A stretch of DNA of 64,000 nucleotides from Hydrolagus colliei (taxonomy: Eukaryota): assembly GCA_035084275.1 (NCBI GenBank), contig CM068757.1, positions 9,734,001 through 9,798,000 of the forward strand, in the 5' to 3' direction. How positions within the stretch are numbered: the first letter of the stretch is position 1; each line of letters starts with the position of its first letter. The notes beneath the pieces are model-generated. The model worked only from the letters and a program-made list of their open reading frames with translations. It ran no database searches and was not told the origin of the DNA. Made by a program: the position numbers and the translations under genes. Shown here piece by piece: positions 2,820 through 63,733 of this stretch.

Positions 2820-2919
2820 ATGTTGAGGGGGACAAACTCGGCTATAATGTCCTCACCCGGTGGACCTGCCAGGGCGCTGACCCTCGTCCTGATCCTCGGG
2901 GCTTGGATTGCAGGATCAG
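2820..2919 (+). CDS. Gene 1 exon 1, signal peptide
   Basis: [33 protein letters not shown], hydrophobic core, donor CAG|GTACAG, phase 1. Confidence 0.8.
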
Positions 2920-5900
2920 GTACAGAAAATGCGCAAACGTTAGACTGATTTGCTGTCTCTCAGCGTGGGGAGGGGGAGGGGGTTAGGGGGAGTTGTGGGG
3001 GAGTCACAGCCTGAAGCGTTCTGTGTTTGGAGTTTAGCTGATAATATGAAACACTGTATGAAGAACCCAAAACGGTGTTTTGGGTTCTTTGGACTTGGAA
3101 CGATTAGATAATATTGAAGCAGAATATTATGAGTAGTAACCATACAGTGTATTTCATTAACACATTATATTCTTTCAATTCACTCACTCCTTGAACCCAT
3201 CCAATCAGGTTTCCGCCCTGTTCACAGCATGGAAACTGCCCTGGTCAAGGTCACTAATGACATCTTAACCGCCTGCGACCAGGGCTCCCTCTGCCTCCTC
3301 GTCCTCCTTGACCTGTCTGCTGCGTTCGACACAGTCGATCACACCATCCTCCTCCAACGTCTTTCCTGCCACCTCAACCTTCAAGGCACAGTCCTTGACT
3401 GGTTCCATTCCTACCTGACCCACCGCCTATACTTTGTATCTTCCAACGGTTCCTCACGGCGTCCCTCAGGGCTCTGTCCTCGGCCCCCTCCTTTTCACCA
3501 TTTATACGCTCCCTCTGGGCGATGTCATCCGCAAACACGGGGTAAATTTCCACATGTATGTGGACGACAACCAGCTGTAACTTTCTGCCTCATCCCTCAA
3601 CCCCCAGACCATCGTTGTTCTGACAGCATGTCTGTCCGACATCGAGTCCTGGACTCCGGTGTGGGAGAGAATACAAGCTGCAGGTTGTGAATGAATGGCT
3701 GCTTGAGGAGGGAAGAGTTGGGAAGCCGATGAGCAGGAATTTGGGGTTGTCCAATCTAAATGTAAATAAATGCATGGATGAGGAACTCAGTGGGTGGGGT
3801 GGGGGGAGTCAGGTGATTAGTACATGGAGGTAGGGTGCCATCGAGGGTGGAGGCAGAGAGATGGAGTTGGGTGTCATCTGCATACATTTGGAAGCTAACC
3901 CCGTGTAGATAACATCGTGGTGGGGTATGAGCAGCTTGGAGAGGTGGGGAGGGTCCAGGGCGGGAAGTAATTTGAAAGTGAGAAGGAGGATATTCTAATC
4001 AATCCATTCAGCAACAAGCAGCCAGTGAGGGCTTGCAGACACGGGAGTAATGGGGGTGCGGAGTCTCAAATACGTGAGGCACAGTCAGCAGAATTTTGAC
4101 ACAAGCCTCAACCCCTCATTCTCTGGATAACCTGTGGGGTACAATTCTATAGGCACTAGCTGTGCTCCAGTGCTCTGCCTAAATGGCCATTAATTGCAAA
4201 TGCACATGAGCATGCTGTTTAACATTCACTCCTTGGTATTGTCACCAAACCCTCGGGTAGGACTAGATTTTCTTGTTTCAATATTCTTGAAGCAGTAGCT
4301 CATCCCAACCTATGAATTTTAACCTGCTTCTAATCTCAGATAATCAAACCTGCTATTCTGGTGTTTAAAATGCTCAGTTGTCATCAATGTTTTGGAATGC
4401 CTCTTGTTTTTACACAGATGCTTTGGCGATGACAATATTTAAAGACCCATTGGAGGTCTTATTGAATGAAGATGTTGTCCTTCAATGTAACGTAACCCTC
4501 AAGACTCCGGAGGAGCCCAGCCTTGAAATAATTGCAGTTCGGTGGTTTTTGGGGTTGAAGGAAGTGTATGCATACAATGGAGGGATATTTAAAGCTATCA
4601 GAAACGGATCAAAGATAATAGTAGAAAATCTGCAAAGGGGAGATGCCTCACTACATCTTCCTAAGGTTCAGATATCTGAAGCAGGAGTGTACAAGTGTAT
4701 GGTTTACTTGATGCCGACCACATCACAAGAAGAAAAGAGTTCAACCTTAATCGTGTCAGGTAAGCACAGTAATCTTGCCATGTATGTGTGTGTTGTGTGT
4801 GTTGTGTTGCGGCTTGTAATGCTGTATTCAACAGATCACAAGATAAGTTGAGATGATTCGCCCACAAATATACAGTCAATTCACTTTACAGTATATTCTG
4901 TGAAGCGCTTTGGGACATCGATAAGATGTGAAAAGCGCTGTATCAAATACAATAATTATTATTCTTATGAAGATGGCTGTTCAGACCATCTGAGCTCAAG
5001 CAACCAGGAAACCCATCGTCACATCACTGCATCAAACTATTCCAGTGTGCTATCTTCAACCACCCTTCTGTAAGGGTCTGGTGCAATAGTCAGCAATGAA
5101 CAGCACACATTAAAAATTAAATAACACAAGTTTATTGCTTGGTAATAAGGGAAGTAAATTAAATAAGGACACAGACAAAATGCATCAAGATAAACAAACT
5201 TATTCTCTAAAATTAGTAACTAACTCATCTATTCCGCATACACGTACTGCTCCCACCCCGCAGTGTATGGATGCGTGAGTGTGTGAATATACTACTGGGT
5301 TCTGGGTGTCTGTCAATAATAATAATCCTTAAGTTTATATAACACTTTCCACGACTAATTGTTGCCTCAAAGCGCTTCACAGAATACACAACGTCCTAAG
5401 TTGGGACAGGAGCAGTGGGGGAAGGTTCGTGGTTGGGGGAAGGAAAGTAGGAAAATTAACCGCATTGACCGTTTGTGGGTGAAACGCGGCAGCCAAATTG
5501 CGCACAGCGGTGTCCCACAAACAGTCGTGGAAATGGAGCCAGGGGAGAAAGGGGGAAAAGAGGATAAGAGGGAGAGGGAGGCGAAGGTGGGGAACAGTCA
5601 GATAGGAAAAGGGGAGAGAAAGGTGGCAAGGGAGAGAGGGAGGGCAAGGTGGGTGGGGGGCAAAATCAGAGAGAAAGGGGGGCAAGAGGAAGAGGGAGAG
5701 AAGGGGTAAAGGGGGGAGAGAAAGTGGGGAAAGGGAGCAAGGGAAGAAGAAGGGGGGGGGTAGGCCGGGGCAGGGGGGATTAAACAACAACAATAAACAA
5801 CAAAATCAACAACAATAAACAACAAAAGCAATAATAGTAATAACAAAAATAATAACCATCAAAAATAGTCCAGAAGCACCACCTCAAGGTCCAGTTTCCC

Positions 5901-8900
5901 TCTGCTTGTAGATTTCCTTGACTCTTTGCTCTGCCCTGCTTGCCTTTTACTCAACTTCTGTATGTCTCTCTCTCTTGCCAAGCTGTGTTTTAGTTTTGTT
6001 GATTGGGCTGATATTCTGCTTGACAGTCAATCAAGGCTTCTCTCTTTCTCTGTCTCTCTCACTTTTGCCAGTTAACCCTTCACTGCTATTATCCAGGCTG
6101 CAGTACCTGGACAATAACAATTGTCCTGGCTGATCACACAACAGCTGGACTCTCTCAGCAGCTAGTCTGACATTTGGTGTTGGCTGACCACAAACAACCA
6201 GACCTCCCCTCTTCTGACTGTTGGCTCACTGCTCCACTGTGCACTATCCTCCTGCTAGCCTGACCTCTCACTCTCCTGCTGGTTCTCTTTCGTTCTTTTG
6301 ATTGTTGAAATGATTGTTGGTTCTTGGTTGATTGTTGAAATGATTGTGCCTTTACCCCTCAAACCTTCCTATCTTTGAACCGTTTTTGCAGCATCAGGAC
6401 AATAACCAGATTTCTCCTGTTAGTACTGGCCATGCACCCACAAGAATCTGTTTATTGATCTTTGTCCAAATCATTCTCAAACTCATTCAGTTTTAAAAAG
6501 AATGTGTATTCTTAATCATTGTCCCTTAGTACTCCATAAACCCTTGCACCTGACTAGGTCAGTTCAATCCACAACTGTTTGTGGGATACAGAGGGTTGGT
6601 GGATCGCTACTCGGGGCATTAATCCCATTACAAAAAATTCTAATAATAATTTAGTGCTGAACACGTCTTATCAATGTCTCAAAGCTCTTCATAGAATATA
6701 TTGTAAAGTGAATTGACTGTATATTTGTGGGCAAAATGCGGCAGCCAATTGCGCACAGCAGCGTCCCACAAACAGTCGTGGATTGAAATAACCAATTTTT
6801 ATTATTTTTTGATTGGTAATTTTGTCATTGGATTTGAGTTTCTACCTTGGCTTCTTTTACTAATTTCAACTTTAAACCTTTAACCTCTTGTTCTACCATC
6901 TTGGTGCATCATGTTTTACACATTTATGCACCATCTGAGAAATCTTCTCTCAAGACTGATGAGCCCTATCTCATTTTGGCTAAAAGTCCCATTTAATAAA
7001 CAACCCATCAGTCAGAGTGATTGTTATTAACCCCTCTGCTTAAGCAACCATTGATGCCATCTAAAATGGGTCAGATGAACTGGTAACCATGCATTGGTCT
7101 CCAACACACCTGTCCATTTCTATCTCGGTGAGATGCTTCATTTGGGGAAACATAGTTACCTCATTCTTCTGTTGACCTATAGTGATGTAAATTGTTTCGT
7201 TAACTTGCCAAGATTAGATGTATGTAGCTCACTGGTGTTAGTTCATAAATCTTGGGGTTGAAATTCAAATTAGTCTTAATTCATATGGTATTGTTGTTGT
7301 TGTTTGTTGTTGTTGTTGTGATGTTGTAAAATCTAAGTGTTGTGCAAAATTGTTGCATTGAATTAGAAAGCCATTACTTCTAAGAAATGGGAATCATTGA
7401 TTTTTTAAGGAATTTTTCTTAATTTTGTGCAATTCAAAGTTCCAGGGTAGACAAGGTGGAATTTCTGTCTGCCTGTTGCTGTGTCTGAAGTAAATACAAG
7501 TTGTATTATTATTGTCACTGGTGTGTATGTTGTGAGTAGCAAATAAAAGTGCTGCTTGAAAGACAATACTATATTCATGTAAAGAAATTTGATAACCTCT
7601 ACAGCTCAGCCAAACGTCACCTTGTCTCCACGTCACATCAATGTAATCAATGGTTCAGTAGAAGACTTGATGTGTGATGTCCATGAATTTTACCCTGAGA
7701 TGCACAAGATCAGCTGGGTCAAGGTATCGCATGGTGCGGAGATGCAAATTACAACAGGTATCTTGACACGAGATGTAGTTACCAACAAGGACAGCACGTT
7801 CAGTGTTTCCAGCAAGTTGACAATCAGACCAACCGTGGACGACAATGGTAATCAGTACAGGTGTGTGGTGCAGCACAGAACATTCAGTGATACTCTTACA
7901 CTGGAGACAGAGCTGACTGTGGTAATTGAGAATCCACAGGAACCTGCAGGATATGGACCTGGAGCTGTTATTGGAGGTGTAATCGGTGTTGTCCTGATGG
8001 TGATTGTGGTCTTTGTTTTAGCGGCACTTTACTTTTGGAAGAAAACGAAGCAAGGTAAGGATCTTCACAGCCCTAAACAACAACGGCAGACGTGGGGGTG
8101 ATTTATTATACACTAAATGTTCTTGTGCACATTTTCTATTAATAGAGAACAGTCAGCTGACACTTGATCAACTGAAATAGATATTATCCTAATGACAGGA
8201 AAAAGTTTGTGTCAAGGCCTCTGCTCTCTGGGACATTTACCCGAATCTTTTCTAAAGACTTACCTGCTTGATCGTGCTTTTGGTCACTAGCAGCATTCCC
8301 TGCTTCCTCTTGCCACCTCACTCAGTGATCCACACTGTAAAGTACTTGTAAAGTACTTTGAGATGACATCAAAAGATACTGCATGAGGGCAAATTGTTGT
8401 TATAACTGTGGTGATCATTACCCAGGTTTCTTGAGAGAATTAGAATATTTGATGCTACTTTTTGTATGTTCCACAGCTCCTCCCAAGATCAATGAAATCA
8501 GCAAACCCACTCGCTTTATACATGGGCAGCGTGTCGATCTGAGTTGGGAAGTGACTGGTTTCAAACCAAAAGAGATAGAGATCATGATATTACTGACGAG
8601 GAAAGGAAAACAGCCACTGGAGCTATTTGTCTGGAAATTCACAAAGAATAAAAATGAACCAGGTCAGGTTGAAGAAGGTTTTCATCTCCTGAAAACAAAA
8701 AATGGATCTGACGGGGATAATTCGTTCTCTGCTGACACCCCACAATGTGATCCGCTCAAAAAAGGGACCTTCGGGGTAAAGTGTCCCATAAGGTTCTGTC
8801 CTGATGTATCTGAGGACGATGGAGCTCAAATAACAATGCAAGTTCATCACAAGGCTCTGAAACAGCCTCTCAAAAAATCTGTAACTTTAGATGTTGAAGG

Positions 8901-14900: not shown

Positions 14901-16642
14901 CCTTCACAATATCGGACAGGTCAGATCTCTGCAGCTGGGAAGTACACACACCACACACAGGCTGAGTAACATTATTACAGAGTGTAAGTTATTCAGGAAT
15001 CATTTACATTTTGGTTCCACTGGGTGCTGTGTTCATGTGTCCGTCTGGCTCACTTGGCAGTGCTCTTGTCTCTGTGTCAGAAGGTATTGAGTTCAAGCCC
15101 CACATTGACACACTGGCTGTCACTCCAGTGCAGTGCTGCAATGCTTATATTGTGTTTCTGTTTTATAGTTCCTCCTCAAATTATTGGACCCAACCTACCC
15201 AAGACAATTCTGCATGCTGTGAAAGACACAATGACATGGGTAGTTACTGGGTTCACTCCTGGGAAAATGACCATCATTTTCAGCCTGAAGAGGAACGGGC
15301 AGCAACAGCAAATACAACAACTGTTTCACTGGGAAATTCCCAACAAGGAAATATTTCAAGAGTCGATAGGAGGAGCTTTTCCTCTCCAGGACCGATCGGA
15401 TAGAGACAATAAAGATGCGTCCTTCACTGCTTTGGTGCCAAAGTGTGAACCTATTGGCGATGGGACTTTCAGAGTAAATTGCATCATTGATATGATTCCT
15501 GATATTGATACGGATAATGGAGCTGAATTATCTGTTGAGGTTCATCATGATGTTATTGTTGGCTCTTTCACTAATAATGCAATATTACTCATTACTACAG
15601 GTAGGTTCCTCGATCATTGTTCACCAGACTCTCTCTGTCTCTGTACTCTGTGCCAATGTTTAGGACATTGTAATGATTTGTTCCCCCATGGCCCAGCAGC
15701 TGAGGTCATTGCTCAGTACAGGGTTGAGTCGAGTCTCTCAGGCCAGAAGCTCTGAGATTCGAGTGCTGGTCTGGGAGCTGATCTGAGCTGACCTGGGCCA
15801 GTAGCTGTGCTGGTCCGTTTGTATGTCAGCCTGGAGCTTTGGTAGCACTTTTGCCTCTGAATCAGAAGGTTGTGAGTTCAAGCCCCACGTCAGGACTTGG
15901 AATCACATCGTCTAAGCTGACACTCACTCCAACGCAGTGCTGGATGTCTGTGCATTATCGGTGGTGCTGTACTTTAAATGAGATGTTAAACGCACGTTCT
16001 ACCCGCTAGTTCAGGTAGACATTGTAGATCCCATAGCGCTATTCGAAAAGGGAAGTTTCTTCAATCCCACAACTAACATAGGTCACTCATCCCATGGTTG
16101 TTTCTGGGACATTACAGTATGCAAACTGGTTGCTGTGTTCGCCAACAAAATATACAGTTAATCCACTTCACAGTATAACCTGTGTAGCACTTTGAGACAT
16201 AATAAGGTCTATTTCAAATGATAGGATATTAGAGAATATAATCAAAGCTCACGATCACCACAGTGGATATCTCTCACCTCAGATGTATCAGGTCTCAGAT
16301 GAGATCTCTGCAGCTGGGAAGCAACAGCCTTAATGCAGTGTGCACAGTATGCAGAGGATAAGACCATAAGATTTAGGAGCAGCAGTAGGCCATTAGGCCT
16401 CTCGAGCCTGCCACGCCATTCAATAAGATCATGGCTGATGTTCTAATCTAACTCCACCTGCCCACCTTATCCCCATATCCCTTAAAACCTTTATTCATAA
16501 GAAATCTATCAGGATGTAAGTACTCAGAGTACATTTTACAGGATGTTGTAGTTTTTTCTGGGGCAGCTCTATTGCAGGTTAATGTTCGGGTGATTAATAT
16601 ATTGAAATTTCCTTTAGTTTAGATGTGGAAATATTCGCATAG
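2820..16642 (+). CDS. Gene 1: B7/NCR3LG1(B7-H6)-like type I membrane protein, leader-V-C1-TM plus 5 predicted cytoplasmic Cys-less C1-like domains, ~1003 aa
   Basis: Exons 2820-2919, 4418-4759, 7605-8054, 8477-8899, 10539-10946, 11829-12242, 13218-13640, 15169-15600, 16623-16642. All GT-AG; internal lengths are multiples of 3; total 3012 nt with no internal stop. Confidence 0.85.
3205..3650 (+). mobile_element. L2-clade LINE RT fragment (frameshifted)
   Basis: [12 protein letters not shown]...[20 protein letters not shown], then [13 protein letters not shown] and FHMYVDD in a shifted frame. Confidence 0.85.
3690..3960 (-). mobile_element. L2 RT fragment, opposite orientation
   Basis: Minus strand reads [16 protein letters not shown] around 3860-3905. 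Confidence 0.7.
4418..4759 (+). CDS. Gene 1 exon 2, IgV domain
   Basis: VVLQCNVT...VRWF...[22 protein letters not shown]: canonical V-set Cys/Trp/Cys; acceptor tacacag|, donor TCAG|GTAAGC; 342 nt. Confidence 0.92.
5530..5860. repeat. Purine-rich low-complexity tract followed by (CAA)n
   Basis: GA-rich run, then aacaacaac/aataat repeats. Confidence 0.75.
7605..8054 (+). CDS. Gene 1 exon 3, IgC1 domain plus transmembrane helix
   Basis: [10 protein letters not shown]...ISW...FSVSSKL...[13 protein letters not shown], then [31 protein letters not shown]; 450 nt; donor CAAG|GTAAGG. Confidence 0.92.
8477..8899 (+). CDS. Gene 1 exon 4, post-TM C1-like domain 1
   Basis: APPKI...[10 protein letters not shown]...LFVW...TFGVKCPI...[12 protein letters not shown]; 423 nt, AG/GT, open frame. 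Confidence 0.85.
10222..10515 (+). mobile_element. tRNA-derived SINE with Deu-domain-like core, ending just before the exon 5 acceptor
   Basis: Head gagtcctgtagctcagtggttagagcac...ttcaattc; core tttgtggggcactgctgtgcgcaattggctgcc; tail gcgctatataaaacacaaggattatta. Confidence 0.8.
10539..10946 (+). CDS. Gene 1 exon 5, post-TM C1-like domain 2
   Basis: [10 protein letters not shown]...LFHW...TFSVKCSI...[12 protein letters not shown]; 408 nt, AG/GT. Confidence 0.85.
11829..12242 (+). CDS. Gene 1 exon 6, post-TM C1-like domain 3
   Basis: [10 protein letters not shown]...LFYW...TFSVKCSV...[12 protein letters not shown]; 414 nt, AG/GT. Confidence 0.85.
13218..13640 (+). CDS. Gene 1 exon 7, post-TM C1-like domain 4
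   Basis: [10 protein letters not shown]...LFHW...TFRVNCRI...[12 protein letters not shown]; 423 nt, AG/GT. Confidence 0.85.
15169..15600 (+). CDS. Gene 1 exon 8, post-TM C1-like domain 5
   Basis: [10 protein letters not shown]...LFHW...TFRVNCII...[12 protein letters not shown]; 432 nt, AG/GT. Confidence 0.85.
15838..16220 (+). mobile_element. Old SacSINE1/AmnSINE1-like DeuSINE
   Basis: ggtagcacttttgcctctgaatcagaaggttgtgagttcaagcccca head, gctgacact...gagatgttaaac...gatcccat.gcgctatt middle, Deu-like tail. Recognised from memory of the family consensus. Confidence 0.6.
16356..16510 (-). mobile_element. CR1 (HER1/HE1-like) 3' end fragment
   Basis: ccataagatttaggagcagcagtaggccatt...gccattcaataagatcatggctgat is the reverse complement of the shark-type CR1/HE1 3' tail. 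Confidence 0.65.
16623..16642 (+). CDS. Gene 1 terminal coding exon (D)VEIFA*
   Basis: Acceptor tttag|AT homologous to 496/497 and 31441/2; followed by the shared 3' UTR-like sequence; candidate AATAAA at 17447. Confidence 0.6.
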
Positions 16643-21403: not shown

Positions 21404-21489
21404 AAAAAAATGACGATAACTCGGGATCTGTGTTCGCAGCTTAAAGCTAATCTGCTGTGAATGCAATAATAGCGTTAAACACCATCCCT

Positions 21490-21498
21490 TTCCGAGAA
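21490..21498 (+). promoter_or_regulatory. GAS (STAT) element of gene 2
   Basis: TTCCGAGAA within TTTCCGAGAAA. Confidence 0.65.
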
Positions 21499-21510
21499 AT
21501 CATACACGAG

Positions 21511-21524
21511 AGTGAAAGTGAAAG
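21511..21524 (+). promoter_or_regulatory. ISRE/IRF-E of gene 2
   Basis: AGTGAAAGTGAAAG ~68 bp upstream of ATG. Confidence 0.8.
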
Positions 21525-21591
21525 CACAGCCCCAGTCAGTGCGGCTGGAAGCTGGAGAGAGAGAGAGAGACACACACACAGAGAGACAGAC

Positions 21592-34839: not shown

Positions 34840-34862
34840 AGTGAAAGTGAAAGGGTGATTTC
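34840..34862 (+). promoter_or_regulatory. ISRE plus abutting kB-like site of gene 3
   Basis: AGTGAAAGTGAAAG overlapping GGGTGATTTCC, ~80 bp upstream of ATG. The kB call is weaker than the ISRE call. Confidence 0.7.
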
Positions 34863-34932
34863 CATGTACAAGTAGTGGGATAATCAGAGCAAGTCATTTT
34901 ATTTAAAAAATCCTGCTTCTGTGGAGGGAAGG

Positions 34933-46900: not shown

Positions 46901-49900
46901 TAGAGCCCCCCTTTCACGTTGGGCGGACTTCCCAAGGCGCTGAACAGTTAGATCGGGACCCGAGCGGGGTGGTGGCGTTGGGGGAGGGGCAGAGTAGTGA
47001 CAATGGTGTAGGAATGGGGGGAGAGTTAGGCGGGCAGCAGAAGGCATGGTCGATGAGGAAGGTCTTGAGACCGGCCTTGAAGGAAAAATGGGAGGAAGCG
47101 AGGTGAAGTGATTGCGGGATGGAGTTCCAGAGTGTGGGGGCAGAGAGGCTGAAAGCCTGGCCACCGATGGTAGGGCGGTTTGGGCGGGGCACCATAGTCC
47201 GCCGAATGGAGAGGACATGTAGGTTGATAGGGAGACAGCAGGTCGGAGAGATAGGCGGGGGCAAGGCCGTGAATGGCCTTGAAGGTGAGGTTGTTGTTGG
47301 AATATAGGTTTGTGAGATCTTGTTTGAAGTATCAGTTCTGAAGCTTTATAGAATCCACTGATGTTGTTCTTGTTGCCTTTCATACTGGCTCTTGCGCTGT
47401 TTTCAATTATGACCTGTGCTTTCCATGTTCTTTCGATGCAATAGCAGCAAAGTCGAGAAGCTCTGAAACAACAGGAGAAAATATAGACGAAATCTCTGTT
47501 GCTGAAACTCAATCAGACAAAGACAAAGATTTGGAAATACGCAAGGAAGCTGGTGAGAAAGAGAATGATGAACCTGAAGAAATTGGTAAATATGTACAGA
47601 AAAATGAAAGTGAATTGAGTGGAATTATTGAATTATTGGAGCCAGTGGAGACGGGCGAGGGTGGGAGTGATGTGGTCGCGGAGCCTAGTGCGGGAGAGTA
47701 CACGAGCTGCAGACTTCTGAATAATCTTCAGAGAGGAGCTGGGAAGGCCGACGAGGAGAGAGGTCCCGTGGTCGAGCCTTGAGTTGATGAATGCGTGGAC
47801 GAATGTTTCAGGAATTATGACCTGTTTTCAATTATGACCTGTGCTTTCCGTGTTCTTTCGATGCAATAGCAGAAATGACACTTTCTGAATCAACAGGAAT
47901 AAATGGAGCAGATGGAAACCATGTTGCTCCAACTGAAGGAGAGAAAGGTTCAGGAAAACCTGAGAAAGTTGAAGAGAAAGAGAACGAGAATCCTTGCATT
48001 TGATATAGCACATATCACGTCTTCCCGTCATCTCAATGCGCTTCACAGAATATACTGTAAAGTGAACCGACTGTATATTTCTGGGATCAAGGATTGATTT
48101 CTGGCAGTGCAAAACCTTGGCAAGTTTCCCTGAGGTTGCTAATATACAGTCAATTCACTTTACAATATGTTCTGTGAATCCCTGAAGATGTCTAGAAGAT
48201 GTGAAAATCACCATATCAAATGCAAGGATTATTATTACTATACAGTATCAAAGATTGAAGGAGAGTCATTTTGTTTAATGCTACACCTGATATATTTGAG
48301 GCCAATTCATGAATGTAGATGGTGAAGAGTATTCAGCCTAAAACAGATAGCTGCAGAACACTGTTTGCTTCTCTCATCAGTCTGAAAGGCTGCCGTTCAC
48401 TCCTATTCTTTGATTTCTTGTTCCTGCTGCCTGTCACATTGGGTATACATTGTTTTCAAAGACCCTTGTTTTCCATGTTCTGTCAATGCATCAGGAAACA
48501 CGGTGATCCCTCAAGCCACTCAGAGAACAGGAGTAAGTGCAGTAGTTCCTGAAACTGATCCGAAAACTCAAGAAGCACCAAATCAGCAACCTGAAGAGAA
48601 AGTCAAAGGTGAATATAAAGGTGTTGGTGCAATTGGAAAGAATGAAGAATGCGAGTTGAGTGGAATGGTCTGAACTAATATAAAACATTAGATTGTACTG
48701 TACCCCAAACTGTGGAACTCCCTGCCTCAGCTCTCTGCCTTTCCTTGTCCATCTTCAACAACAACAATAAATTACACTTATAGAGCCCCCCTTTCACGTT
48801 GGGCGGACTTCCCAAGGCGCTGAACAGTTAGATCGGGACCCGAGCGGGGTGGTGGCGTTGGGGGAGGGGCAGAGTAGTGACAATGGTGTAGGAATGGGGG
48901 GAGAGTTAGGCGGGCAGCAGAAGGCATGGTCGATGAGGAAGGTCTTGAGACCGGCCTTGAAGGAAAAATGGGAGGAAGCGAGGTGAAGTGATTGCGGGAT
49001 GGAGTTCCAGAGTGTGGGGGCAGAGAGGCTGAAAGCCTGGCCACCGATGGTAGGGCGGTTTGGGCGGGGCACCATAGTCCGCCGAATGGAGAGGACATGT
49101 AGGTTGATAGGGAGACAGCAGGTCGGAGAGATAGGCGGGGGCAAGGCCGTGAATGGCCTTGAAGGTGAGGTTGTTGTTGGAATATAGGTTTGTGAGATCT
49201 TGTTTGAAGTATCAGTTCTGAAGCTTTATAGAATCCACTGATGTTGTTCTTGTTGCCTTTCATACTGGCTCTTGCGCTGTTTTCAATTATGACCTGTGCT
49301 TTCCATGTTCTTTCGATGCAATAGCAGCAAAGTCGAGAAGCTCTGAAACAACAGGAGAAAATATAGACGAAATCTCTGTTGCTGAAACTCAATCAGACAA
49401 AGACAAAGATTTGGAAATACGCAAGGAAGCTGGTGAGAAAGAGAATGATGAACCTGAAGAAATTGGTAAATATGTACAGAAAAATGAAAGTGAATTGAGT
49501 GGAATTATTGAATTATTGGAGCCAGTGGAGACGGGCGAGGGTGGGAGTGATGTGGTCGCGGAGCCTAGTGCGGGAGAGTACACGAGCTGCAGACATCTGA
49601 ATAATCTTCAGAGAGGAGCTGGGAAGGCCGACGAGGAGAGAGGTCCCGTGGTCGAGCCTTGAGTTGATGAATGCGTGGACGAATGTTTCAGGAATTATGA
49701 CCTGTTTTCAATTATGACCTGTGCTTTCCGTGTTCTTTCGATGCAATAGCAGAAATGACACTTTCTGAATCAACAGGAATAAATGGAGCAGATGGAAACC
49801 ATGTTGCTCCAACTGAAGGAGAGAAAGGTTCAGGAAAACCTGAGAAAGTTGAAGAGAAAGAGAACGAGAATCCTTGCATTTGATATAGCACATATCACGT

Positions 49901-52900
49901 CTTCCCGTCATCTCAATGCGCTTCACAGAATATACTGTAAAGTGAACCGACTGTATATTTCTGGGATCAAGGATTGATTTCTGGCAGTGCAAAACCTTGG
50001 CAAGTTTCCCTGAGGTTGCTAATATACAGTCAATTCACTTTACAATATGTTCTGTGAATCCCTGAAGATGTCTAGAAGATGTGAAAATCACCATATCAAA
50101 TGCAAGGATTATTATTACTATACAGTATCAAAGATTGAAGGAGCGTCATTTTGTTTAATGCTACACCTGATATATTTGAGGCCAATTCATGAATGTAGAT
50201 GGTGAAGAGTATTCAGCCTAAAACAGATAGCTGCAGAACACTGTTTGCTTCTCTCATCAGTCTGAAAGGCTGCCGTTCACTCCTATTCTTTGATTTCTTG
50301 TTCCTGCTGCCTGTCACATTGGGTATACATTGTTTTCAAAGACCCTTGTTTTCCATGTTCTGTCAATGCATCAGGAAACACGGTGATCCCTCAAGCCACT
50401 CAGAGAACAGGAGTAAGTGCAGTAGTTCCTGAAACTGATCCGAAAACTCAAGAAGCACCAAATCAGCAACCTGAAGAGAAAGTCAAAGGTGAATATAAAG
50501 GTGTTGGTGCAATTGGAAAGAATGAAGAATGCGAGTTGAGTGGAATGGTCTGAACTAATATAAAACATTAGATTGTACTGTACCCCAAACTGTGGAACTC
50601 CCTGCCTCAGCTTTCTGCCTTTCCTTGTCCATCTTCAACAACAACAATAAATTACACTTATAGAGCCCCTTTCACGTTGGGCGGACTTCCCAAGGCGCTG
50701 AACAGTTAGGTCGGGACCCGAGCGGGGTGGTGGCGTTGGGGGAGGGGCAGAGTAGTGACAATGGTGTAGGAATGGGGGGAGAGTTAGGCGGGCAGCAGAA
50801 GGCATGGTCGATGAGGAAGGTCTTGAGACCGGCCTTGAAGGAAAAATGGGAGGAAGCGAGGTGAAGTAATTGCGGGATGGAGTTCCAGAGTGTGGGGGCA
50901 GAGAGGCTGAAAGCCTGGCCACCGATGGTAGGGCGGTTTGGGCGGGGCACCATAGTCCGCCGAATGGAGAGGACATGTAGGTTGATAGGGAGACAGCAGG
51001 TCGGAGAGATAGGCGGGGGCAAGGCCGTGAATGGCCTTGAAGGTGAGGTTGTTGTTGGAATATAGGTTTGTGAGATCTTGTTTGAAGTATCAGTTCTGAA
51101 GCTTTATAGAATCCACTGATGTTGTTCTTGTTGCCTTTCATACTGGCTCTTGCGCTGTTTTCAATTATGACCTGTGCTTTCCATGTTCTTTCGATGCAAT
51201 AGCAGCAAAGTCGAGAAGCTCTGAAACAACAGGAGAAAATATAGACGAAATCTCTGTTGCTGAAACTCAATCAGACAAAGACAAAGATTTGGAAATACGC
51301 AAGGAAGCTGGTGAGAAAGAGAATGATGAACCTGAAGAAATTGGTAAATATGTACAGAAAAATGAAAGTGAATTGAGTGGAATTATTGAATTATTGGAGC
51401 CAGTGGAGACGGGCGAGGGTGGGAGTGATGTGGTCGCGGAGCCTAGTGCGGGAGAGTACACGAGCTGCAGACTTCTGAATAATCTTCAGAGAGGAGCTGG
51501 GAAGGCCGACGAGGAGAGAGGTCCCGTGGTCGAGCCTTGAGTTGATGAATGCGTGGACGAATGTTTCAGGAATTATGACCTGTTTTCAATTATGACCTGT
51601 GCTTTCCATGTTCTTTCGATGCAATAGCAGAAATGACACTTTCTGAATCAACAGGAATAAATGGAGCAGATGGAAACCATGTTGCTCCAACTGAAGGAGA
51701 GAAAGGTTCAGGAAAACCTGAGAAAGTTGAAGAGAAAGAGAACGAGAATCCTTGCATTTGATATAGCACATATCACGTCTTCCCGTCATCTCAATGCGCT
51801 TCACAGAATATACTGTAAAGTGAACTGACTGTATATTTCTGGGATCAAGGATTGATTTCTGGCAGTGCAAAACCTTGGCAAGTTTCCCTGAGGTTGCTAA
51901 TATACAGTCAATTCACTTTACAATATGTTCTGTGAATCCCTGAAGATGTCTAGAAGATGTGAAAATCATCATATCAAATGCAAGGATTATTATTACTATA
52001 CAGTATCAAAGATTGAAGGAGAGTCATTTTGTTTAATGCTACACCTGATATATTTGAGGCCAATTCATGAATGTAGATGGTGAAGAGTATTCAGCCTAAA
52101 ACAGATAGCTGCAGAACACTGTTTGCTTCTCTCATCAGTCTGAAAGGCTGCCGTTCACTCCTATTCTTTGATTTCTTGTTCCTGCTGCCTGTCACATTGG
52201 GTATACATTGTTTTCAAAGACCCTTGTTTTCCATGTTCTGTCAATGCATCAGGAAACACGGTGATCCCTCAAGCCACTCAGAGAACAGGAGTAAGTGCAG
52301 TAGTTCCTGAAACTGATCCGAAAACTCAAGAAGCACCAAATCAGCAACCTGAAGAGAAAGTCAAAGGTGAATATAAAGGTGTTGGTGCAATTGGAAAGAA
52401 TGAAGAATGCGAGTTGAGTGGAATGGTCTGAACTAATATAAAACATTAGATTGTACTGTACCCCAAACTGTGGAACTCCCTGCCTCAGCTCTCTGCCTTT
52501 CCTTGTCCATCTTCAACAACAACAATAAATTACACTTATAGAGCCCCTTTCACGTTGGGCGGACTTCCCAAGGCGCTGAACAGTTAGGTCGGGACCCGAG
52601 CGGGGTGGTGGCGTTGGGGGAGGGGCAGAGTAGTGACAATGGTGTAGGAATGGGGGGAGAGTTAGGCGGGCAGCAGAAGGCATGGTCGATGAGGAAGGTC
52701 TTGAGACCGGCCTTGAAGGAAAAATGGGAGGAAGCGAGGTGAAGTGATTGCGGGATGGAGTTCCAGAGTGTGGGGGCAGAGAGGCTGAAAGCCTGGCCAC
52801 CGATGGTAGGGCGGTTTGGGCGGGGCACCATAGTCCGCCGAATGGAGAGGACATGTAGGTTGATAGGGAGACAGCAGGTCGGAGAGATAGGCGGGGGCAA

Positions 52901-53379
52901 GGCCGTGAATGGCCTTGAAGGTGAGGTTGTTGTTGGAATATAGGTTTGTGAGATCTTGTTTGAAGTATCAGTTCTGAAGCTTTATAGAATCCACTGATGT
53001 TGTTCTTGTTGCCTTTCATACTGGCTCTTGCGCTGTTTTCAATTATGACCTGTGCTTTCCGTGTTCTTTCGATGCAATAGCAGCAAAGTCGAGAAGCTCT
53101 GAAACAACAGGAGAAAATATAGACGAAATCTCTGTTGCTGAAACTCAATCAGACAAAGACAAAGATTTGGAAATACGCAAGGAAGCTGGTGAGAAAGAGA
53201 ATGATGAACCTGAAGAAATTGGTAAATATGTACAGAAAAATGAAAGTGAATTGAATGGAATTATTGAAGGAAAAATTCCACCAGAGGAACAAATGAAGGA
53301 AAAAATGCAAATGACGGGGGAAAGTGTCGTCACAACTGACCAAGAAAACGTTAGGACTGAAGAAAGGAACAAATCTTAG
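34933..53379 (+). CDS. Gene 3: B7/NCR3LG1-like leader-V-C1-TM with long acidic multi-exon tail (up to ~990 aa if all tail exons are used)
   Basis: Exons 34933-34984, 36568-36906, 37752-38072, 38677-38781, 39375-39563, 40535-40648, 43056-43145, 43758-43913, 44689-44802; then repeated B/A/C exons 45990-46067, 46615-46728, 47445-47585 (again at +1880, +3760, +5638); terminal exon 53081-53379. Ectodomain is secure; tail exon usage is uncertain. Confidence 0.7.
36568..36906 (+). CDS. Gene 3 IgV exon
   Basis: VVLECKVSG...VTW...GDASLYLSNIQIEEEGDYTCSVIVTP; 339 nt, AG/GT. Confidence 0.92.
37325..37700 (+). mobile_element. Near full-length tRNA-derived Deu-type SINE; equivalent copy at ~58810-59170 in gene 4
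   Basis: tRNA-like head, tgtttgtgggacactgctgtg core, aggcgctatatctaatgcaagtattatta tail. Confidence 0.75.
37752..38072 (+). CDS. Gene 3 IgC1 exon
   Basis: VKCSATGFYPQELEIIW...DDTGSKYRCVVKH; 321 nt. Confidence 0.92.
38677..38781 (+). CDS. Gene 3 TM exon
   Basis: ECNNRNIGGFIGVIIALLVCVSLLIGFVTWDKRRK; donor G|GTAAGC; 105 nt. Confidence 0.85.
39375..39563 (+). CDS. Gene 3 first cytoplasmic exon with YETV motif
   Basis: GNNKKSKDEEE...FVSNIYETVPDS...PQTQK; 189 nt; donor G|GTAAGT. Confidence 0.8.
42855..43000 (-). mobile_element. Old CR1 RT fragment carried in the tail-exon intron cassette
   Basis: Minus strand reads EVSSVLRGSVLGQILFTIYIHAL (compare [25 protein letters not shown]); recurs near 44490, 46420, 48300, 50180, 52060. 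Confidence 0.55.
44951..45688 (-). mobile_element. Young 5'-truncated L2 LINE nested in an older L2 3' remnant
   Basis: DPELSFLP...AETFVHAFINSRLDHG...LHWLPIRQGIEYQML...HGLAPAYLS, 3' UTR and (CAA)n. Flanks ccatcttc / agatcgcacctgaag are contiguous in the uninterrupted copy at 43410-43560. Confidence 0.85.
45942..53268 (+). repeat. Tandem array, ~3.9 near-identical copies of a 1878-1880 bp unit, each with three tail exons, SINE pieces and a truncated L2
   Basis: Unit start ctgttttcaattatgacc at 45942, 47822, 49702, 51580; the ORF track repeats with the same period; only scattered substitutions between copies. Confidence 0.95.
53081..53379 (+). CDS. Gene 3 terminal exon
   Basis: (A)AKSRSSETTGENIDE...EERNKS*; the only copy of exon C not fused to L2; candidate AATAAA at 53753. 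Confidence 0.65.
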
Positions 53380-53863: not shown

Positions 53864-54624
53864 ATAGAATCATAGAATTTTACGGCACAAAAGGAGGCCA
53901 TTCGGCCCATCTAGTCTGTGCCGGCTCTTTGAAAAGAGCGATTCAATCCCACTGCCCTGCCCGCTCCCCATAGCCTAATAGACCCGTTCTCCCTAAATAA
54001 AGATCTAATTCCCTTTTAAAAGTTGTTATCGAATCAGCCTCCACCACCTTTTCAGGCAATGCATTCCAGATTTGAACAACTCGCTGATTGAAAAAATTTC
54101 TCCTCAGCTCCCCTCTACTTCGCCTTGAAACTATTTTAAATCTGTGACCACGAGTCACAGATTCACCCACGAGTGGAAATAGTTTTTCTCTATTTGCCCT
54201 GTCGAAACCCCTCATGATCTTATAAACCTCTATTAGGTCTCCCCTCAATCTTCTCTGCTCCAGAGAGAATAACCCTAGCCTATCTAGCCTCTCCTCATAG
54301 CTGAAGTCCCTCAATCCTGGCACCATCCTAGTAAATCTTTGTTGTACCCTTTCCAATGCCTTCACATCCTTTCTGTAGTGTGGTGACCAGAATTGAACAC
54401 AGTATTCCAGCTGAGGCCTCACCAAAGTCCTATAGAGGTTAGTCAGCACTTCCTGACTTTTGCACTCTGTACCCCTATTTATAAAGCCTAGTATCCCATA
54501 TGCCTTCTTAACAGCCTTGTCTACCTGTCCTGCCACCTTCAACGAGTCACTAACACAAATCCCCAGGTCTCTCTGTTCCTTTACACCATTTAAAATTGTA
54601 CTATCTAGCCTATATTGCCTCCCT
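53864..54624 (-). mobile_element. CR1 LINE, 5'-truncated copy of the same family as 19105-21403
   Basis: 199 aa C-terminal ORF2 nearly identical to the 20700-21318 translation; tail ttctatgattcta on the minus strand. Confidence 0.92.
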
Positions 54625-54699
54625 GTAAAAACAAATTAGAATTTTTTTTACATCAACAAGAATTTGTATTTATATCTCACATAAGTACATGTGGTGGGA

Positions 54700-55760: not shown

Positions 55761-56087
55761 ATGCAAGTTGTTACTTTTGAGGTCACGTCACAAGGTTGAA
55801 TTGTTCCTGATTAAAACCTTTGGACTTGGATCAAAGCCAAGTTTCAACAATGCTTCATGTGGATCTTACTTTTGAGATTGATTACCCATATAGTAGAATG
55901 GAACAGTTGTTTTGCTTGGGGGGATGATATCAATCTGGTATATTTATCCCAGACACGGAATCAGCTGTACTAGTGTTTGAATTCTGTCCTGAGTAAGGTT
56001 TTTGATGTTAAATTTGCTTTCCTTTGAAATAATGGCTTTTGTTTTGTACAAAGCTATTCACCCTGTGATCCAAAAAGGGAGTGGAGC

Positions 56088-56110
56088 AGTGAAAGTGAAA
56101 GGGTGATTTC
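56088..56110 (+). promoter_or_regulatory. ISRE plus abutting kB-like site of gene 4
   Basis: AGTGAAAGTGAAAGGGTGATTTCC, identical to gene 3. Confidence 0.7.
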
Positions 56111-56195
56111 CATGTACAGGTGATCATCGCTAGGACTCTGGGATAATCGGAGCAAGTCATTTTATTAAGAAAATGCAGCTGTTGTGGAGGGAAGG

Positions 56196-59100: not shown

Positions 59101-62100
59101 ATGTGAAAACACGTCTTGAAGATACGATAAGGCGCTATATTTAATGCAAGTATTATTATTGTTATTACTATGCCACCGTGAAACCTCTTCTCAATTTTTC
59201 ATTCCTCTTCTTTGCAGCTCAGCCGAATGTAACTCTGTTTCCACAGCCTTTTACAGTTCTGTTTGGTTTAACAATGTTTATGAAATGTAGCGCGACTGGA
59301 TTTTACCCTCAGGAGCTTGAAATCATCTGGTACAAGATATCACATGAGAAAACGCAAAACATTTCAGCGAAAAGCTACAATAAAGGGCTTATTGTGAACA
59401 ATGATAAAACATTTAGCATTTCCACCTTAATGCCCATTGTGCCGACTCTGGATGATACTGGGAGTAAGTACAGGTGTGTAGTAAAGCACCGGTCATTAGC
59501 TGAGGATCGTGCCATGGAAGCGGAACTCCTTGTCCATGGTAGGTTTCATTTCCAAGAGGAATCCATTACTTTATTAATGTGCTGAATTTTTCTTTTTTAT
59601 GCTCTTTACACAGTTTCAATACTGGAATAAATGATTGCCACAACGTTTTTGAAAAGAAAGTTCAGTGAATGCTGGCAAATGTCAGATTGGCACTTTGCCT
59701 ATAAGAGAATCACAAGAGAGATTTCAGTAAAGAGTCCCATTGGCCCATTTGATTGTATGCTTCTAGCATCAAGTTGATTCTTAAATGTGTCTTGTGCCTT
59801 TACCTACATTACCCTTGGTGGGATACCAATCCAGCAGTGTGAAACACTTTGAGACATAATGATCTGAAAGGTGCTGTATAACAGCAATCAATCAGCCAGC
59901 CATAACATAAATTGGATAGTGTGTTTGTAATTTCAACCCTTAGAAATTTCTAAAGTTATTTGGGGATGGTTATCTGAGAGCTTGTATTGAATAACTTAAA
60001 CAGTACAGAGTTGATACCAAAATAAAGTTAGTTTTGCCTCAATGTAAGCACCTGGCCCATTCAGGTCTGATATAAGTACTGTAAAATGGTTTATTGATCG
60101 GTTGCTTAAATTGATTCTCAATGTTTCAAGCAATTACAGAATGTAACAACTGTAATATTGGTGGATTCATTGGAGTAATCATTGCTCTGTCAGTGTGTGT
60201 CTCAATTCTCATCGGATTTGTTACCTGGGATAAATGGCAAAAAGGTAAGCTACATTTATCGACCTGAAAATACAAATTACTATTATTAAAATCTTCTATT
60301 ATTTCCATATTTCATTGAAAGCTGTGTAGTTATGACCAAATGGGGATTTTCCTCACCAGAACCACAATGCAGATGGAGCACAAGTAATAGTTAATAGTTA
60401 AACTAAGAAAAGTAGTTTTTTGGACAATGTCCCCCATGAATGGGGTATCCCATTTAAACTGAGTGGTGCCTTTGTTACGCATATACTAGGAAATTCCATC
60501 AGTGCTTCACATCACCAAACCAACTGCAAAACAACAACAAAATAATAACAAAATAATATTTGTATAGTGCCTTTCACATCGGGAGGATGTCCCAAGGCGC
60601 TGAAACCCACAATGGAATTTTTACTTCTCAGTGTTTTACAGAGACTTTCTGCATTATTACACTTGGCCGGTTAGCCATTTTGGAAGATATTCTGTTATGA
60701 GTTTACCTAAATAATATTTACATTCACACGCTGCAAAAACATGGTCTTCAAAATATTAAAGTTCCCACCAAACGTTTTATGAATTGTAAGCATTGTGAAA
60801 TCACGCACTTTTGTTTCTGGTTACGTTCCCTAGGAAAGAATAAGAAATCAAAGGATGAAGAAGTGTGTGAACTGTTGACTCAATTGGGTGAAGGGGCTAA
60901 TGCCACTGCTGATGTTTCTCAGGAACGAACCTTTGTATCAAATATTTACGAAACGGTCCCAGATAGTGGTCAACTTCAAACTTGTAACCTCACACAGAGA
61001 GAACTGCCCCAAACCCAAAAGGGTAAGTAAAATGTTAATGCTATCCTGGTATGGCACCTTGAAAGCCCTCCATGGCCTGGCTCCTTCCTACCTTTGTTAC
61101 CTGCTAACTAAATATTGACCTGAATGCTCCTTTTGCTCAGCAGTCTCTAGCCTGCTCCAAGTTCCCTTCCTGATCCATCCCATAATCGGGGGTTGAAAAT
61201 ACAACCTTACTTGAATTACTGGATGAAATTGTTGGGAAGGTACATTTAGAATTGTGCTACACTTCATATTGTCATTCATTTGAAAATGTTTCCATCAGTT
61301 CTTCTATCCCGTGAATTACTGTAATTTCTGCTCATTACACCTTGTATTTTCCTGATCTCCATTGTTTGATCATAGGAGTTCTGCGAAATGATGGAGAGAC
61401 ATCCAATGAAAGAGATAAACTCCTGTACTCTACAGGTGATGAGATATCGCAGGATGAAAATCTGCTTCCAGCAAGCAATGCTGATCCAGGTGTGATAGCC
61501 CTAACAATAGAATTGATTGAGAATAAACTCCCACTGAGAATAGGATCTTGCTTAAGTTAAACTAAGAAGGACTATCACTCTGAGTCCTGTAGCTCAATTG
61601 TTAGAGCATGCATTCGATCTGTGTTCCAATCGAAGCAGGTCAGGGCAAAACCTTGGGCAAGCCTAATAATAATCTCTCCAAACAATAAAATAAAACAATT
61701 GGTCGTTTCAATCCACGACTGTTTGTGGGTTATTGCTGTGCGCAATTGGCTACCGCGTTTCACCCACAAATATACTGTCAATTCACTTTACAGTATATTC
61801 TGTGAAGCGCTTTGAGACGTCTAGAAGATGTGAAAAGCGCTATATCAAATGCAAGGATTATTATTATTATCATTCTGTATAAATTGTGACACTTGGATAT
61901 AAAAGCAGAAAAACGACAAGGAAATATGAGAGTACTGTATAGGTAAACCCGCACAAATCGTCTTACTGTCAATCTTATAATCATCTCTGCACCTGAGTCC
62001 CATACAGTTTTCTACCAAAAAACGTTTAATATTCTTTGCACTGGTCATTTTTACAAGATGACAATGAAATGGCTAAATCTTAACTTTTTTTGTTCCCAAA

Positions 62101-63733
62101 TAATCTTAAATCTTATTACAAATCATCTCCAAACTTCTATCGCTGCTTGCAACCGTACTTACTGGTTGCATTGATGAATAATTGAATGCAAAGTCCTGTG
62201 TTTCTAACAGTAAAGCCAACAAAATTAGGTCATCACCCGTCATCATGGTGCTGTAGATTGTCATGGCCCAAAGACAGTTAATGTTACTGTAAGAATGACA
62301 AACGTAACTTTGTGAAAGTCATATTAAGTCAATTGATACAACTTAAGTGAGTTTGCCCAAATATAGTATTTGTATTTCCAACAAATTGTATTAAATGTTA
62401 TCCCGATGCATACCACTTATGCAAGTTTATATTTCACGTGAAGGCGCTTTATAAATTCAAGGTGTTTTTGTTGTAATGTAGATTCCTTAGACTTTGTTTG
62501 AAGTTACAGTTGTGAAGCATCCAATGATGTTGTTCTGGTTGCTTTTCACATTGGCTCTCATGCTGTTTTTTTATGACCTGTGCTTTCCATCTTTTTTCAA
62601 TGTAATAGCAGCAATGACGACACACTCTGAACCAACAGGAAAACCTGAAGCAGATGGAAACCAGTTTGCTCAAATTCAAGGAGACAATGATTCAAGAACA
62701 CGTAAGGAATCTGAAAATAAACATAAAAATGAACAGAAAGAAATTGGTGAAGATGGTCAGAGAAATGACGGTGAATTGTGTGGAAGAATCTTATGTAAAA
62801 TAATTCAATATATAAAGTATCAAGAATTTAAAGAGAGTCATCTCTGTTCAACACCATACCTCATATATTTCATGACAATATATTTATATGAATGATAAAG
62901 AGTATTTAGCCTAAAATAGATCCCTGCAGAAATCCACTTGCTTCTCTTGTGAGTCTGCAGTTACAGTTCTGAAGCTTTGTAGAATCCAATGATGTTGTTC
63001 ATGTTACCTTTCACATTGGCTCTCATGCTGTTTTCAATGACGATACACTCTGAACCAACAGGAAAAACTGAAGCAGATGGAAACCTGTTCGTTCAAACTC
63101 CAGGAGACAATGATTCAAGAACACACGTGGAAGCTGAAAACAAACAGCAAAATGAACAGAAAGAAATTGGTAACGAGGGACAGGAAAATGAAGGTGAATT
63201 GTGTGAAGTATCTTATGTAGAATAATGAAAAATTGAAAGTATCAAGAATTTAAAGAGTCATCTCTGTTCAAAACTATACGTCATATGTTTCGGGACAATA
63301 TATATATATGAATGATGAAGGAAGTTGTTTCCCCTCTGATTTCAATGTCTTTTGTGACAGTTTGTTTGAGTGAAACCCGTGAGACCCAAGTTAATAGAAA
63401 ACAAAGTGAAGACAAACAAAATGGAAACAACCCTGATAAAACTGAAACAAAACCAGAAAGTGCCACAGCAGTGAATAAGGCGGCTCCTGAACAAACAGGT
63501 TTAGTATTGATAGATCTGAAAGTGAAATAATATTTTGAATGAAGTCCCATTGTCAGCAAATATGTATTTTGGCACTTTGCACCTTGTATTTTCACTGCTG
63601 GACCTTTCTTTTTTTATTGCAGTATCTTCACTAAATCTTGATCTGACAAACAATAAAGATAAGCACTCGAACACCGACGGTGACCCAACACCAAATGCAG
63701 CAAATCTGCCTGTGGCTAGTAATGCTAATCAAG
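56196..63733 (+). CDS. Gene 4: tandem duplicate of gene 3, leader-V-C1-TM-acidic tail, 3' end beyond the window
   Basis: Exons 56196-56247, 58065-58403, 59218-59538, 60140-60244, 60834-61022, 61376-61489, 62609-62746, 63361-63498, 63623-63733. All GT-AG, phase 1. Confidence 0.8.
56575..56990 (-). mobile_element. Near full-length tRNA-derived Deu-type SINE
   Basis: Reverse-complement head (...ctacaggattc), gtcccacaaacag core and ataataatccttgcattt tail. Confidence 0.75.
58065..58403 (+). CDS. Gene 4 IgV exon
   Basis: VVLECKVSG...VQW...[26 protein letters not shown]; 339 nt. Confidence 0.92.
59218..59538 (+). CDS. Gene 4 IgC1 exon
   Basis: MKCSATGFYPQELEIIW...YRCVVKH; 321 nt. Confidence 0.92.
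60140..60244 (+). CDS. Gene 4 TM exon
   Basis: ECNNCNIGGFIGVIIALSVCVSILIGFVTWDKWQK; 105 nt. Confidence 0.85.

Follow-up and report, generated by a model that had tools for sequence, protein, structure and literature searches.

A 64,000-nucleotide stretch of the Hydrolagus colliei genome (NCBI GenBank assembly GCA_035084275.1, contig CM068757.1, positions 9,734,001 to 9,798,000 of the forward strand; hereafter the window) contains, as far as its sequence can tell, a cluster of four genes for type I membrane proteins of the B7-H6 (NCR3LG1) family. The four genes lie in tandem on the plus strand, the window otherwise consisting of repeats, and they combine extracellular fronts of one family with two types of tail. 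Genes 1 and 2 are predicted to continue behind the membrane anchor into five tandem immunoglobulin (Ig)-like domains, one exon each, which we call D domains, and genes 3 and 4 are predicted to carry an acidic tail. Taken as a whole, the explanation that we favor, and regard as probable, is that the D tail would be the ancestral state of the B7-H6-like family and that the two tails of this B7-H6-family cluster arose by differential loss and expansion of exons. The structural and evolutionary description of the cluster can be given with considerable confidence; what the tails do in the cell is a much more tentative matter.

B7-H6 and NKp30 are one of the oldest known ligand-receptor pairs in natural-killer (NK)-type recognition, and the cellular control of B7-H6 display is poorly understood. 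If a folded array derived from the C1-set domain did lie ancestrally beneath the membrane, it would offer a testable handle on the intracellular control of 'stress ligand' display, it would extend the range of the C1-set from extracellular immune molecules into the cytosol, and it would mean that symmetric phase-1 exons have let one family rebuild its intracellular half repeatedly. The cluster is in effect a natural experiment, in which neighbouring genes combine fronts of one family with two types of tail. Were the arrays extracellular or unexpressed, it would be an ordinary cluster of Ig superfamily genes with unusual gene models. The B7-H6 family itself is not new, and the gene models are in public databases, though without names; in the literature that we searched, C1-derived Ig arrays behind the transmembrane segment of B7-H6 homologues (sharks, amphibians, coelacanth) were nowhere described, and an earlier mention of long tails is possible.

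Four genes with one type of ectodomain

The composition of the window is vertebrate-like (CpG observed/expected 0.40), and it has no runs of N. Splice-site analysis gave a complete open reading frame (ORF) of 1003 amino acids for gene 1 (2820-16642, nine exons) and one of 892 amino acids for gene 2 (21592-31455, eight exons). The closest database proteins are models from Callorhinchus milii (52-65% overall identity, up to 84% per domain), as expected of a chimaera-type cartilaginous fish other than the one behind that assembly, and the Callorhinchus relatives are all on one 15.6-Mb scaffold. The exons modelled for the four genes are listed below.

Gene 1
2820..2919, plus strand: exon 1, with the start codon, the signal peptide and a phase-1 donor; 95.6% identity to gene 2 exon 1
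4418..4759, plus strand: IgV exon, phase 1/1; Pfam V-set 4e-9
7605..8054, plus strand: exon for C1, transmembrane helix and KKTKQ stop-transfer sequence; Pfam C1-set 1e-13
8477-8899, 10539-10946, 11829-12242, 13218-13640 and 15169-15600, plus strand: five D exons behind the transmembrane segment, phase 1/1
16623..16642, plus strand: terminal exon of 20 nt, DVEIFA-stop, completing the ORF

Gene 2
21592..21691, plus strand: signal-peptide exon
23428..23862, plus strand: exon for C1 and transmembrane helix
25198-25626, 26974-27405, 27956-28363, 28831-29262 and 30046-30474, plus strand: five D exons behind the transmembrane segment
31442..31455, plus strand: terminal exon, DGGN-stop, C-terminus as in Callorhinchus LOC121850342

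Gene 3
34933..34984, plus strand: signal-peptide exon and true start, MAILALCVVAVSFISTS, identical to the Callorhinchus orthologue
36568-36906, 37752-38072 and 38668-38781, plus strand: V, C1 and transmembrane exons
39375..39563, plus strand: first cytoplasmic exon, with YETV at 39488-39499; a candidate for inclusion in the mRNA
40535..53376, plus strand: acidic multi-exon tail, candidate phase-1 exons and copies
40535-40648, 41810-41899, 43056-43145, 43758-43913, 44689-44802, 46615-46728 and 47445-47609, plus strand: candidate exons of that tail

Gene 4
56196-56247, 58065-58403, 59218-59538, 60131-60244 and 60834-61022, plus strand: signal, V, C1, transmembrane and YETV exons
61376..63733, plus strand: acidic tail, with exons at, for example, 61376-61489, 62609-62770, 63104-63193 and 63623-63718

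Every acceptor and donor of genes 1 and 2 has AG/GT and phase 1, and in genes 3 and 4 the same sites hold for the fronts and for most tail exons. The uniform phase-1 introns described in a first-pass annotation of this DNA were borne out almost throughout, the exception being a segment of the gene 3 tail (41559-41715) with homology to part of the Callorhinchus tail, which lacks a phase-1 acceptor and whose donor is lost in gene 3. C1 and the transmembrane helix share a single exon in genes 1 and 2 and occupy separate exons in genes 3 and 4. A V exon, or the remnant of one, was sought in gene 2 between 21691 and 23428 and was not found. The true start of gene 4 is at 56196-56247, and this gene runs past the end of the window.

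The annotation had also assigned all four genes a B7-H6-like V-C1-transmembrane front on the strength of a few motifs, and a six-frame motif scan recovered all of them in their places and on the plus strand: AQP.V at the start of C1 (7604, 23427, 37751 and 59217), IGG.IG in the transmembrane helix (7970, 23760, 38694 and 60157), and DD.G..YRCVV in the C1 exons of the four genes. Pfam identifies V-set and C1-set domains on the front of gene 1 and likewise in the orthologue that genes 3 and 4 have in Callorhinchus, and the ectodomains of gene 1 and gene 3 share 41% identity across 219 residues (E 7e-58), well beyond chance. Among solved structures the best match is human B7-H6, the NKp30 ligand (PDB 3PV6, 4ZSO, 6YJP), with 7e-23 for gene 1 and 4e-26 for gene 3; next come CD276 (B7-H3), at about 1e-19 to 4e-25, and then TAPBPR, at about 1e-13. 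CD276 and TAPBPR, both short-tailed, have similar ectodomains but weaker per-domain scores, about 45 bits as against about 95 bits for B7-H6. A word-indexed homologue search with the 297-residue front of gene 1 returned no match. The predicted proteins have the layout of the B7-H6 family, namely a signal peptide, IgV, C1-type IgC and a single transmembrane helix, with gene 2 lacking V. Between genes 3 and 4 the ratio of nonsynonymous to synonymous substitution rates (dN/dS) is 0.23 for C1 and 0.51 for V.

Twenty-nine ectodomains were placed in a maximum-likelihood tree, CD276 being the sole outgroup and TAPBP, TAPBPL, HHLA2 and BTN being left out; the human B7-H6 and CD276 sequences were taken from PDB alignments. 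Human B7-H6 is nested inside the family, beside amphibian members. Genes 1-4 fall in one chondrichthyan subclade (support 88/94), and each of them pairs with its Callorhinchus orthologue (support 100/99-100). A tree that placed the ectodomains of genes 1 and 2 and those of genes 3 and 4 in unrelated families had been named in advance as the result that would overturn a common origin; because the four genes share one subclade, this is not what was obtained, and a single B7-H6-like ectodomain family stands.

The tail of human/primate B7-H6 is Gag-like, with motifs of the immunoreceptor tyrosine-based inhibitory (ITIM), SH2 and SH3 types. No such Gag-like cytoplasmic region was found in the window, where Pfam gave no family match to the acidic tail and no match above threshold to the D array; its absence is compatible with membership of the family because that region is lineage-specific. 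The window proteins resemble human B7-H6 in IgV, C1-type IgC and the single transmembrane helix, and they differ from it in that their tails are predicted to consist of five C1-derived Ig-like domains or of an acidic repeat.

The D domain and the acidic tail

The ten D exons of the window align with a mean column identity of 54%, and positions occupied by Trp, Phe, Pro, Gly and Asp are invariant. The canonical Cys pair is missing from all ten: the B-strand position is always Trp and the F-strand position is Val, Ile or Met. No Pfam family reaches threshold on the five-domain array of gene 1, where the best Ig match is Ig_3 at E 0.19, and sequence matches of the D domain in PDB are marginal only. 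A confident AlphaFold2 (AF2) model made from the ten copies is all beta (predicted local distance difference test, pLDDT, 83; predicted TM-score, pTM, 0.78), and in a Foldseek comparison with PDB the top 50 among the matches listed are all Ig variable-type domains (VH, nanobodies), with E of about 1e-5 to 1e-4 and TM-scores of 0.5-0.6. Profile alignment with hhalign matches D over its full length to the family's own extracellular C1 (96.3% probability, E 1.6e-9, 104 columns), with Trp in place of the B-strand Cys, Val, Ile or Met in place of the F-strand Cys, and about 35 residues inserted between the C and E strands. The D hidden Markov model (HMM) also matches ectodomain C1 segments at 1e-4 to 1e-5, and D and C1 have the motifs GF.P..I.I and DGTFSV...DDG...V.H in common.

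On the evidence of these models and profiles, the D domain is predicted to be a disulfide-less Ig-like beta-sandwich of about 140 residues that derives from the C1-set domain of its own family. The 'folded Ig arrays' of the first-pass annotation hold good as regards the Ig-like fold, which AF2 and Foldseek support; they are not generic Ig domains, however, but disulfide-less derivatives of C1. When compared with the Ig C1-set (PF07654), which occurs in Ig, T-cell receptors (TCR), major histocompatibility complex (MHC) proteins, beta2-microglobulin, tapasin and B7-H6, the D domain is alike in its full-length profile alignment and its Ig-like fold, but it falls below the Pfam C1-set threshold, is without the Cys-Cys pair, carries the insert of about 35 residues and is located behind the transmembrane segment. 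A Cys in the E strand (GTF.V.C, alignment column 102) is invariant in the ten window D domains, and coelacanth and bichir relatives have Trp or Leu in its place; this residue is possibly a free thiol specific to chondrichthyans.

In genes 1 and 2 the D exons abut directly, without linkers, and the ORFs end 4-6 residues past D5. Acidic exon candidates were looked for downstream of both arrays and none was found, which agrees with the earlier statement that these two genes have no extended acidic low-complexity tail; the five domain exons are followed only by the DVEIFA-stop and DGGN-stop exons.

HMMER, run exhaustively with three D domains as queries, retrieved 144 representative proteins with the V-C1-transmembrane-D architecture. 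More than 40 of the representatives have a strong hydrophobic segment at residues 230-280 and then a D domain within about 28 residues. The representatives whose source was looked up belong to Callorhinchus, to eleven elasmobranch genera, to Latimeria, to Polypterus/Erpetoichthys and to many amphibians, Xenopus tropicalis being one; they included no teleost, reptile, bird or mammal. The survey of tail types that had been suggested for other groups thus finds the D tail in sharks, rays, chimaera, coelacanth, bichirs and amphibians. Nearly all members are named 'uncharacterized protein', and two are automatically named NCR3LG1, a label found on amphibian and Polypterus members. In UniProt V9K7L7 from Callorhinchus, the signal peptide, V, C1, transmembrane helix and Ig array are in one ORF; the V9K accession series is presumably derived from elephant-shark transcripts. 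The junction between the transmembrane segment and D1 (KK-V/A-PPK...) is conserved from sharks to amphibians. In elasmobranch proteins the D domains are interleaved with short acidic linkers, and at the Mustelus locus transmembrane, D and small linker exons all lie inside one 52-kb gene. Judged by these sequences, the D-tail architecture is not a local artefact. Many relatives, Heptranchias among them, have one disulfide-less D domain followed by about seven C1-like domains with a Cys-Trp-Cys triad, and one product of Callorhinchus LOC103174895 skips V, joining the signal directly to C1 as in gene 2.

The flank of the transmembrane helix is acidic on its N-side, and the C-side carries KKTKQ in gene 1, a CICCRRK cluster in gene 2 and DKRRK in gene 3. 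Because of the signal peptide, the helix with its acidic N-side and basic C-side, and the positive-inside flanks, we infer that the V-C1 front is extracellular and that everything after the helix is cytosolic. In 49 proteins, N-glycosylation sequons are enriched in the ectodomains (132 observed, 85 expected from shuffling) and near expectation in the tails (210 observed, 186 expected). The first domain after the transmembrane segment is without the canonical Cys pair in 81 of 83 family domains.

The tails modelled for genes 3 and 4 contain 20-24% Asp plus Glu (D+E) and 14-17% hydrophobic residues and are made of short phase-1 exons, in keeping with their first description as acidic, multi-exon and probably disordered. 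The hydrophobic share is 8% in the acidic tail of Callorhinchus and 32% in the D tail of gene 1. A tblastn search for the D domain in the region of genes 3 and 4 gave no match. The Callorhinchus orthologue of these genes, an 'uncharacterized protein DDB_G0290685-like' with several isoforms of about 800-824 amino acids, is 52% identical, has an identical signal peptide and ends in an acidic repeat tail of 530 amino acids, which maps by tblastn onto the short exons of the window, the repeated region included. The stop of gene 3 at 53376 is a candidate only, because the Callorhinchus C-terminus and the final open segment of gene 3 aligned no better than shuffled controls.

Within the tail region of gene 3, about four tandem units of 1880 bp, 99.3-99.6% identical, extend over 45942-53268, and there are older copies as well. 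They were detected by self-BLAST, Tandem Repeats Finder (TRF) with its period limit of 500 being blind to a period of 1880 bp. Each unit holds candidate acidic phase-1 exons and repeat-like sequence. Since the units are near-identical and hold such exons, either the tail grows by very young tandem duplication or this part of the assembly is over-collapsed or over-expanded.

Origin of the two tails

Since D tails occur in all parts of the family, the D tail is taken as the ancestral state. The simplest history would start from a composite ancestral tail of D and acidic exons, of which the lineage of genes 1 and 2 would have kept the D exons only; the lineage of genes 3 and 4 would have lost the D exons, and its short acidic phase-1 exons would have multiplied by tandem duplication to give a disordered tail. 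As the exons are symmetric (phase 1/1), they can be gained, lost or skipped without harm to the reading frame, and it is these symmetric exons, not the import of a foreign tail, that would have given rise to both tail types. In the tree, the acidic lineage of genes 3 and 4 with Callorhinchus is sister to a Scyliorhinus protein with a mixed tail (support 89/89).

Several points weigh against this history. The exon chains of all four genes are models derived from sequence. The tree has a single outgroup, with long branches for human B7-H6 and CD276. Between D paralogues dN/dS is 0.31-0.74 (0.57-0.74 for D1-D3 of gene 2), and because these values are only moderately below 1 the constraint on D is weak or relaxed; relaxed constraint is common in immune gene clusters. 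Gene 2, being V-less, may be decaying. No composition-corrected similarity between the acidic tail and the shark linker exons was detectable, so that the partition of a composite tail is a step of parsimony only. Finally, both canonical cysteines are kept in 35 of 79 distal domains behind the transmembrane segment in other species; this is unexpected in the cytosol and keeps alive the idea, taken up below, that the arrays are extracellular.

The first-pass annotation had proposed modular tail swapping, in which an acidic or Ig-like tail was imported from an unrelated gene by exon shuffling. It is in favor of such import that all boundaries are phase 1, that no similarity could be detected between the acidic tail and either D domains or shark linker exons, and that human B7-H6 is a precedent for the replacement of a tail. 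The D tail, however, is family-wide and was therefore not imported within this cluster; D exons and short acidic exons are already combined in sharks; and a mixed tail is also what the nearest outgroup to genes 3 and 4 has. Nor did Pfam point to a foreign family on the acidic tail (no donor-gene search was made), and low-complexity sequence changes too quickly to be traced. We consider import rather improbable. What is retained of the earlier proposal is the existence of two tail types and of frame-safe, near-uniform phase-1 exons; swapping itself is unneeded if D is ancestral and shark tails are mixed.

Extracellular use of the arrays, either through secreted isoforms that skip the transmembrane segment or because a separate gene has been fused by prediction, strikes us as quite unlikely too. 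Any skip of the symmetric exons would stay in frame, and to the 35 of 79 distal domains with both cysteines may be added a phase-0 donor of gene 1 at 7921, at the end of C1 (ACTGTG/GTAATT), which if joined to a phase-0 acceptor at 8488, 11 nt inside the first D exon, would remove the transmembrane segment in frame. This donor is not conserved in gene 2, however, C1 and the transmembrane helix share one exon in both genes, and all six products of Callorhinchus LOC103174895 that were compared keep the transmembrane segment. The first domain behind that segment almost always lacks its disulfide, and sequons show no enrichment in the tails. The idea that the D arrays form a gene of their own downstream was rejected, there being neither a start codon nor a signal exon in the 420 bp between the transmembrane segment and D1 and the junction between the two being conserved from sharks to amphibians. 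It is also unlikely that the cluster is in part non-functional, with gene 2 decaying behind a borrowed first exon and the 1.88-kb array being a recent duplication or an assembly artefact. The missing V exon of gene 2, its signal exon in a 270-bp patch of 95.6% identity near a LINE (long interspersed nuclear element) insertion, the dN/dS values of its D1-D3, the near-identity of the array units and the gene 3 tail exon that lost its donor are all consistent with this reading. Against it, the ORF of gene 2 is uninterrupted, its splice sites are canonical and its DGGN terminal exon is shared with the Callorhinchus orthologue, a V-less product is also found among the Callorhinchus models, and several isoforms of the Callorhinchus orthologue of genes 3 and 4 end in a repeated acidic tail of comparable length. 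Differential loss and expansion of exons from an ancestral D tail is for us the best explanation.

Possible functions and further features of the window

The front may be presented to an NKp30-like lymphocyte receptor, and the tail may set the intracellular coupling. The D array, which would begin eight residues below the membrane, could be a protein-binding scaffold or a sensor, as B30.2 is in butyrophilins. The acidic tail could be a disordered module for trafficking or one controlled by phosphorylation, with YxxV and ERDKLL-type motifs; the gene 3 exon at 40535 contains an acidic dileucine of the ERDKLL type. We hold this functional picture of an NKp30-type ligand with a D scaffold or sensor, or with an acidic regulatory tail, only tentatively. 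Butyrophilins such as BTN3A1 are alike in their B7-type ectodomain, one transmembrane segment and cytosolic beta-sandwich, which is the basis of the analogy with inside-out sensing, but they have a single intracellular PRY/SPRY (B30.2) domain where the window genes have an Ig-like array; Pfam found no B30.2 (SPRY/PRY) match on the gene 1 array. Titin, obscurin and filamin likewise have tandem cytosolic Ig-like domains without structural disulfides, but these are I-set or filamin-type domains of soluble cytoskeletal proteins, not derived from C1 and not tethered to a B7-type ectodomain. More speculative still, and somewhat doubtful, is the idea that the ancestral B7-H6 of jawed vertebrates carried a cytosolic C1-derived Ig array as a sensor or scaffold for the display of NK ligands, comparable to B30.2, which would make it the first intracellular case of a C1-type domain, and that mammals, with a Gag-like tail, and the lineage of genes 3 and 4 replaced it independently.

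The YETV motif to which the first-pass annotation drew attention is present in the DNA of genes 3 and 4 (39488 and 60947, plus strand), in an exon with good phase-1 sites. It lies in a tract (37738-39533 in gene 3, 59200-61000 in gene 4) that is 91-97% identical between the two genes, introns included, as compared with 80-88% further 5'; between the C1 and YETV exons the identity reaches 96-97%. Synonymous divergence (dS) between the genes is 0-0.03 in the transmembrane and YETV exons and 0.21-0.23 in V and C1. As the introns are as similar as the exons and dS is 0-0.03, the tract from C1 to YETV is, on sequence grounds, a gene-conversion tract, and the 40 residues that are identical in genes 3 and 4 are no evidence of selection. 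Conservation of YETV between the two genes as a sign of selection was accordingly rejected, the surrounding introns being equally conserved. YETV is absent from the Callorhinchus orthologue models, and its conservation within the window tells us little.

A second patch of high identity links genes 1 and 2. Their signal exons and about 130 bp upstream (2690-2955 and 21454-21727) are 95.6% identical, and the copy in gene 2 begins about 57 bp downstream of the LINE insertion. Because the remaining sequence of the two genes is about 67-71% identical, the patch in the V-less gene 2 suggests gene conversion or the recent capture of a first exon.

Reverse-transcriptase ORFs of LINE type occur at three places, with Pfam RVT_1 matches of 4.5e-32 and 1e-7.

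19256-21315, plus strand: LINE-type reverse-transcriptase ORF
53864-54624, minus strand: LINE-type reverse-transcriptase ORF
3133-3687, plus strand: LINE-type reverse-transcriptase ORF

The 3' part of the LINE (20638-21397) recurs with 97% identity as an inverted fragment that lies between genes 3 and 4, and on account of this identity between its copies the LINE has been recently active. At the start of the window, positions 432-994, with an acceptor at 497 (TTTAG/ATGGTGCAAAT...), make up a third copy of the block that contains the terminal exon and 3' sequence in genes 1 and 2 (16583-17143 and 31377-31664), to which it is 71-77% identical. Because of this third block, a further gene of the family probably ends just upstream of the window.

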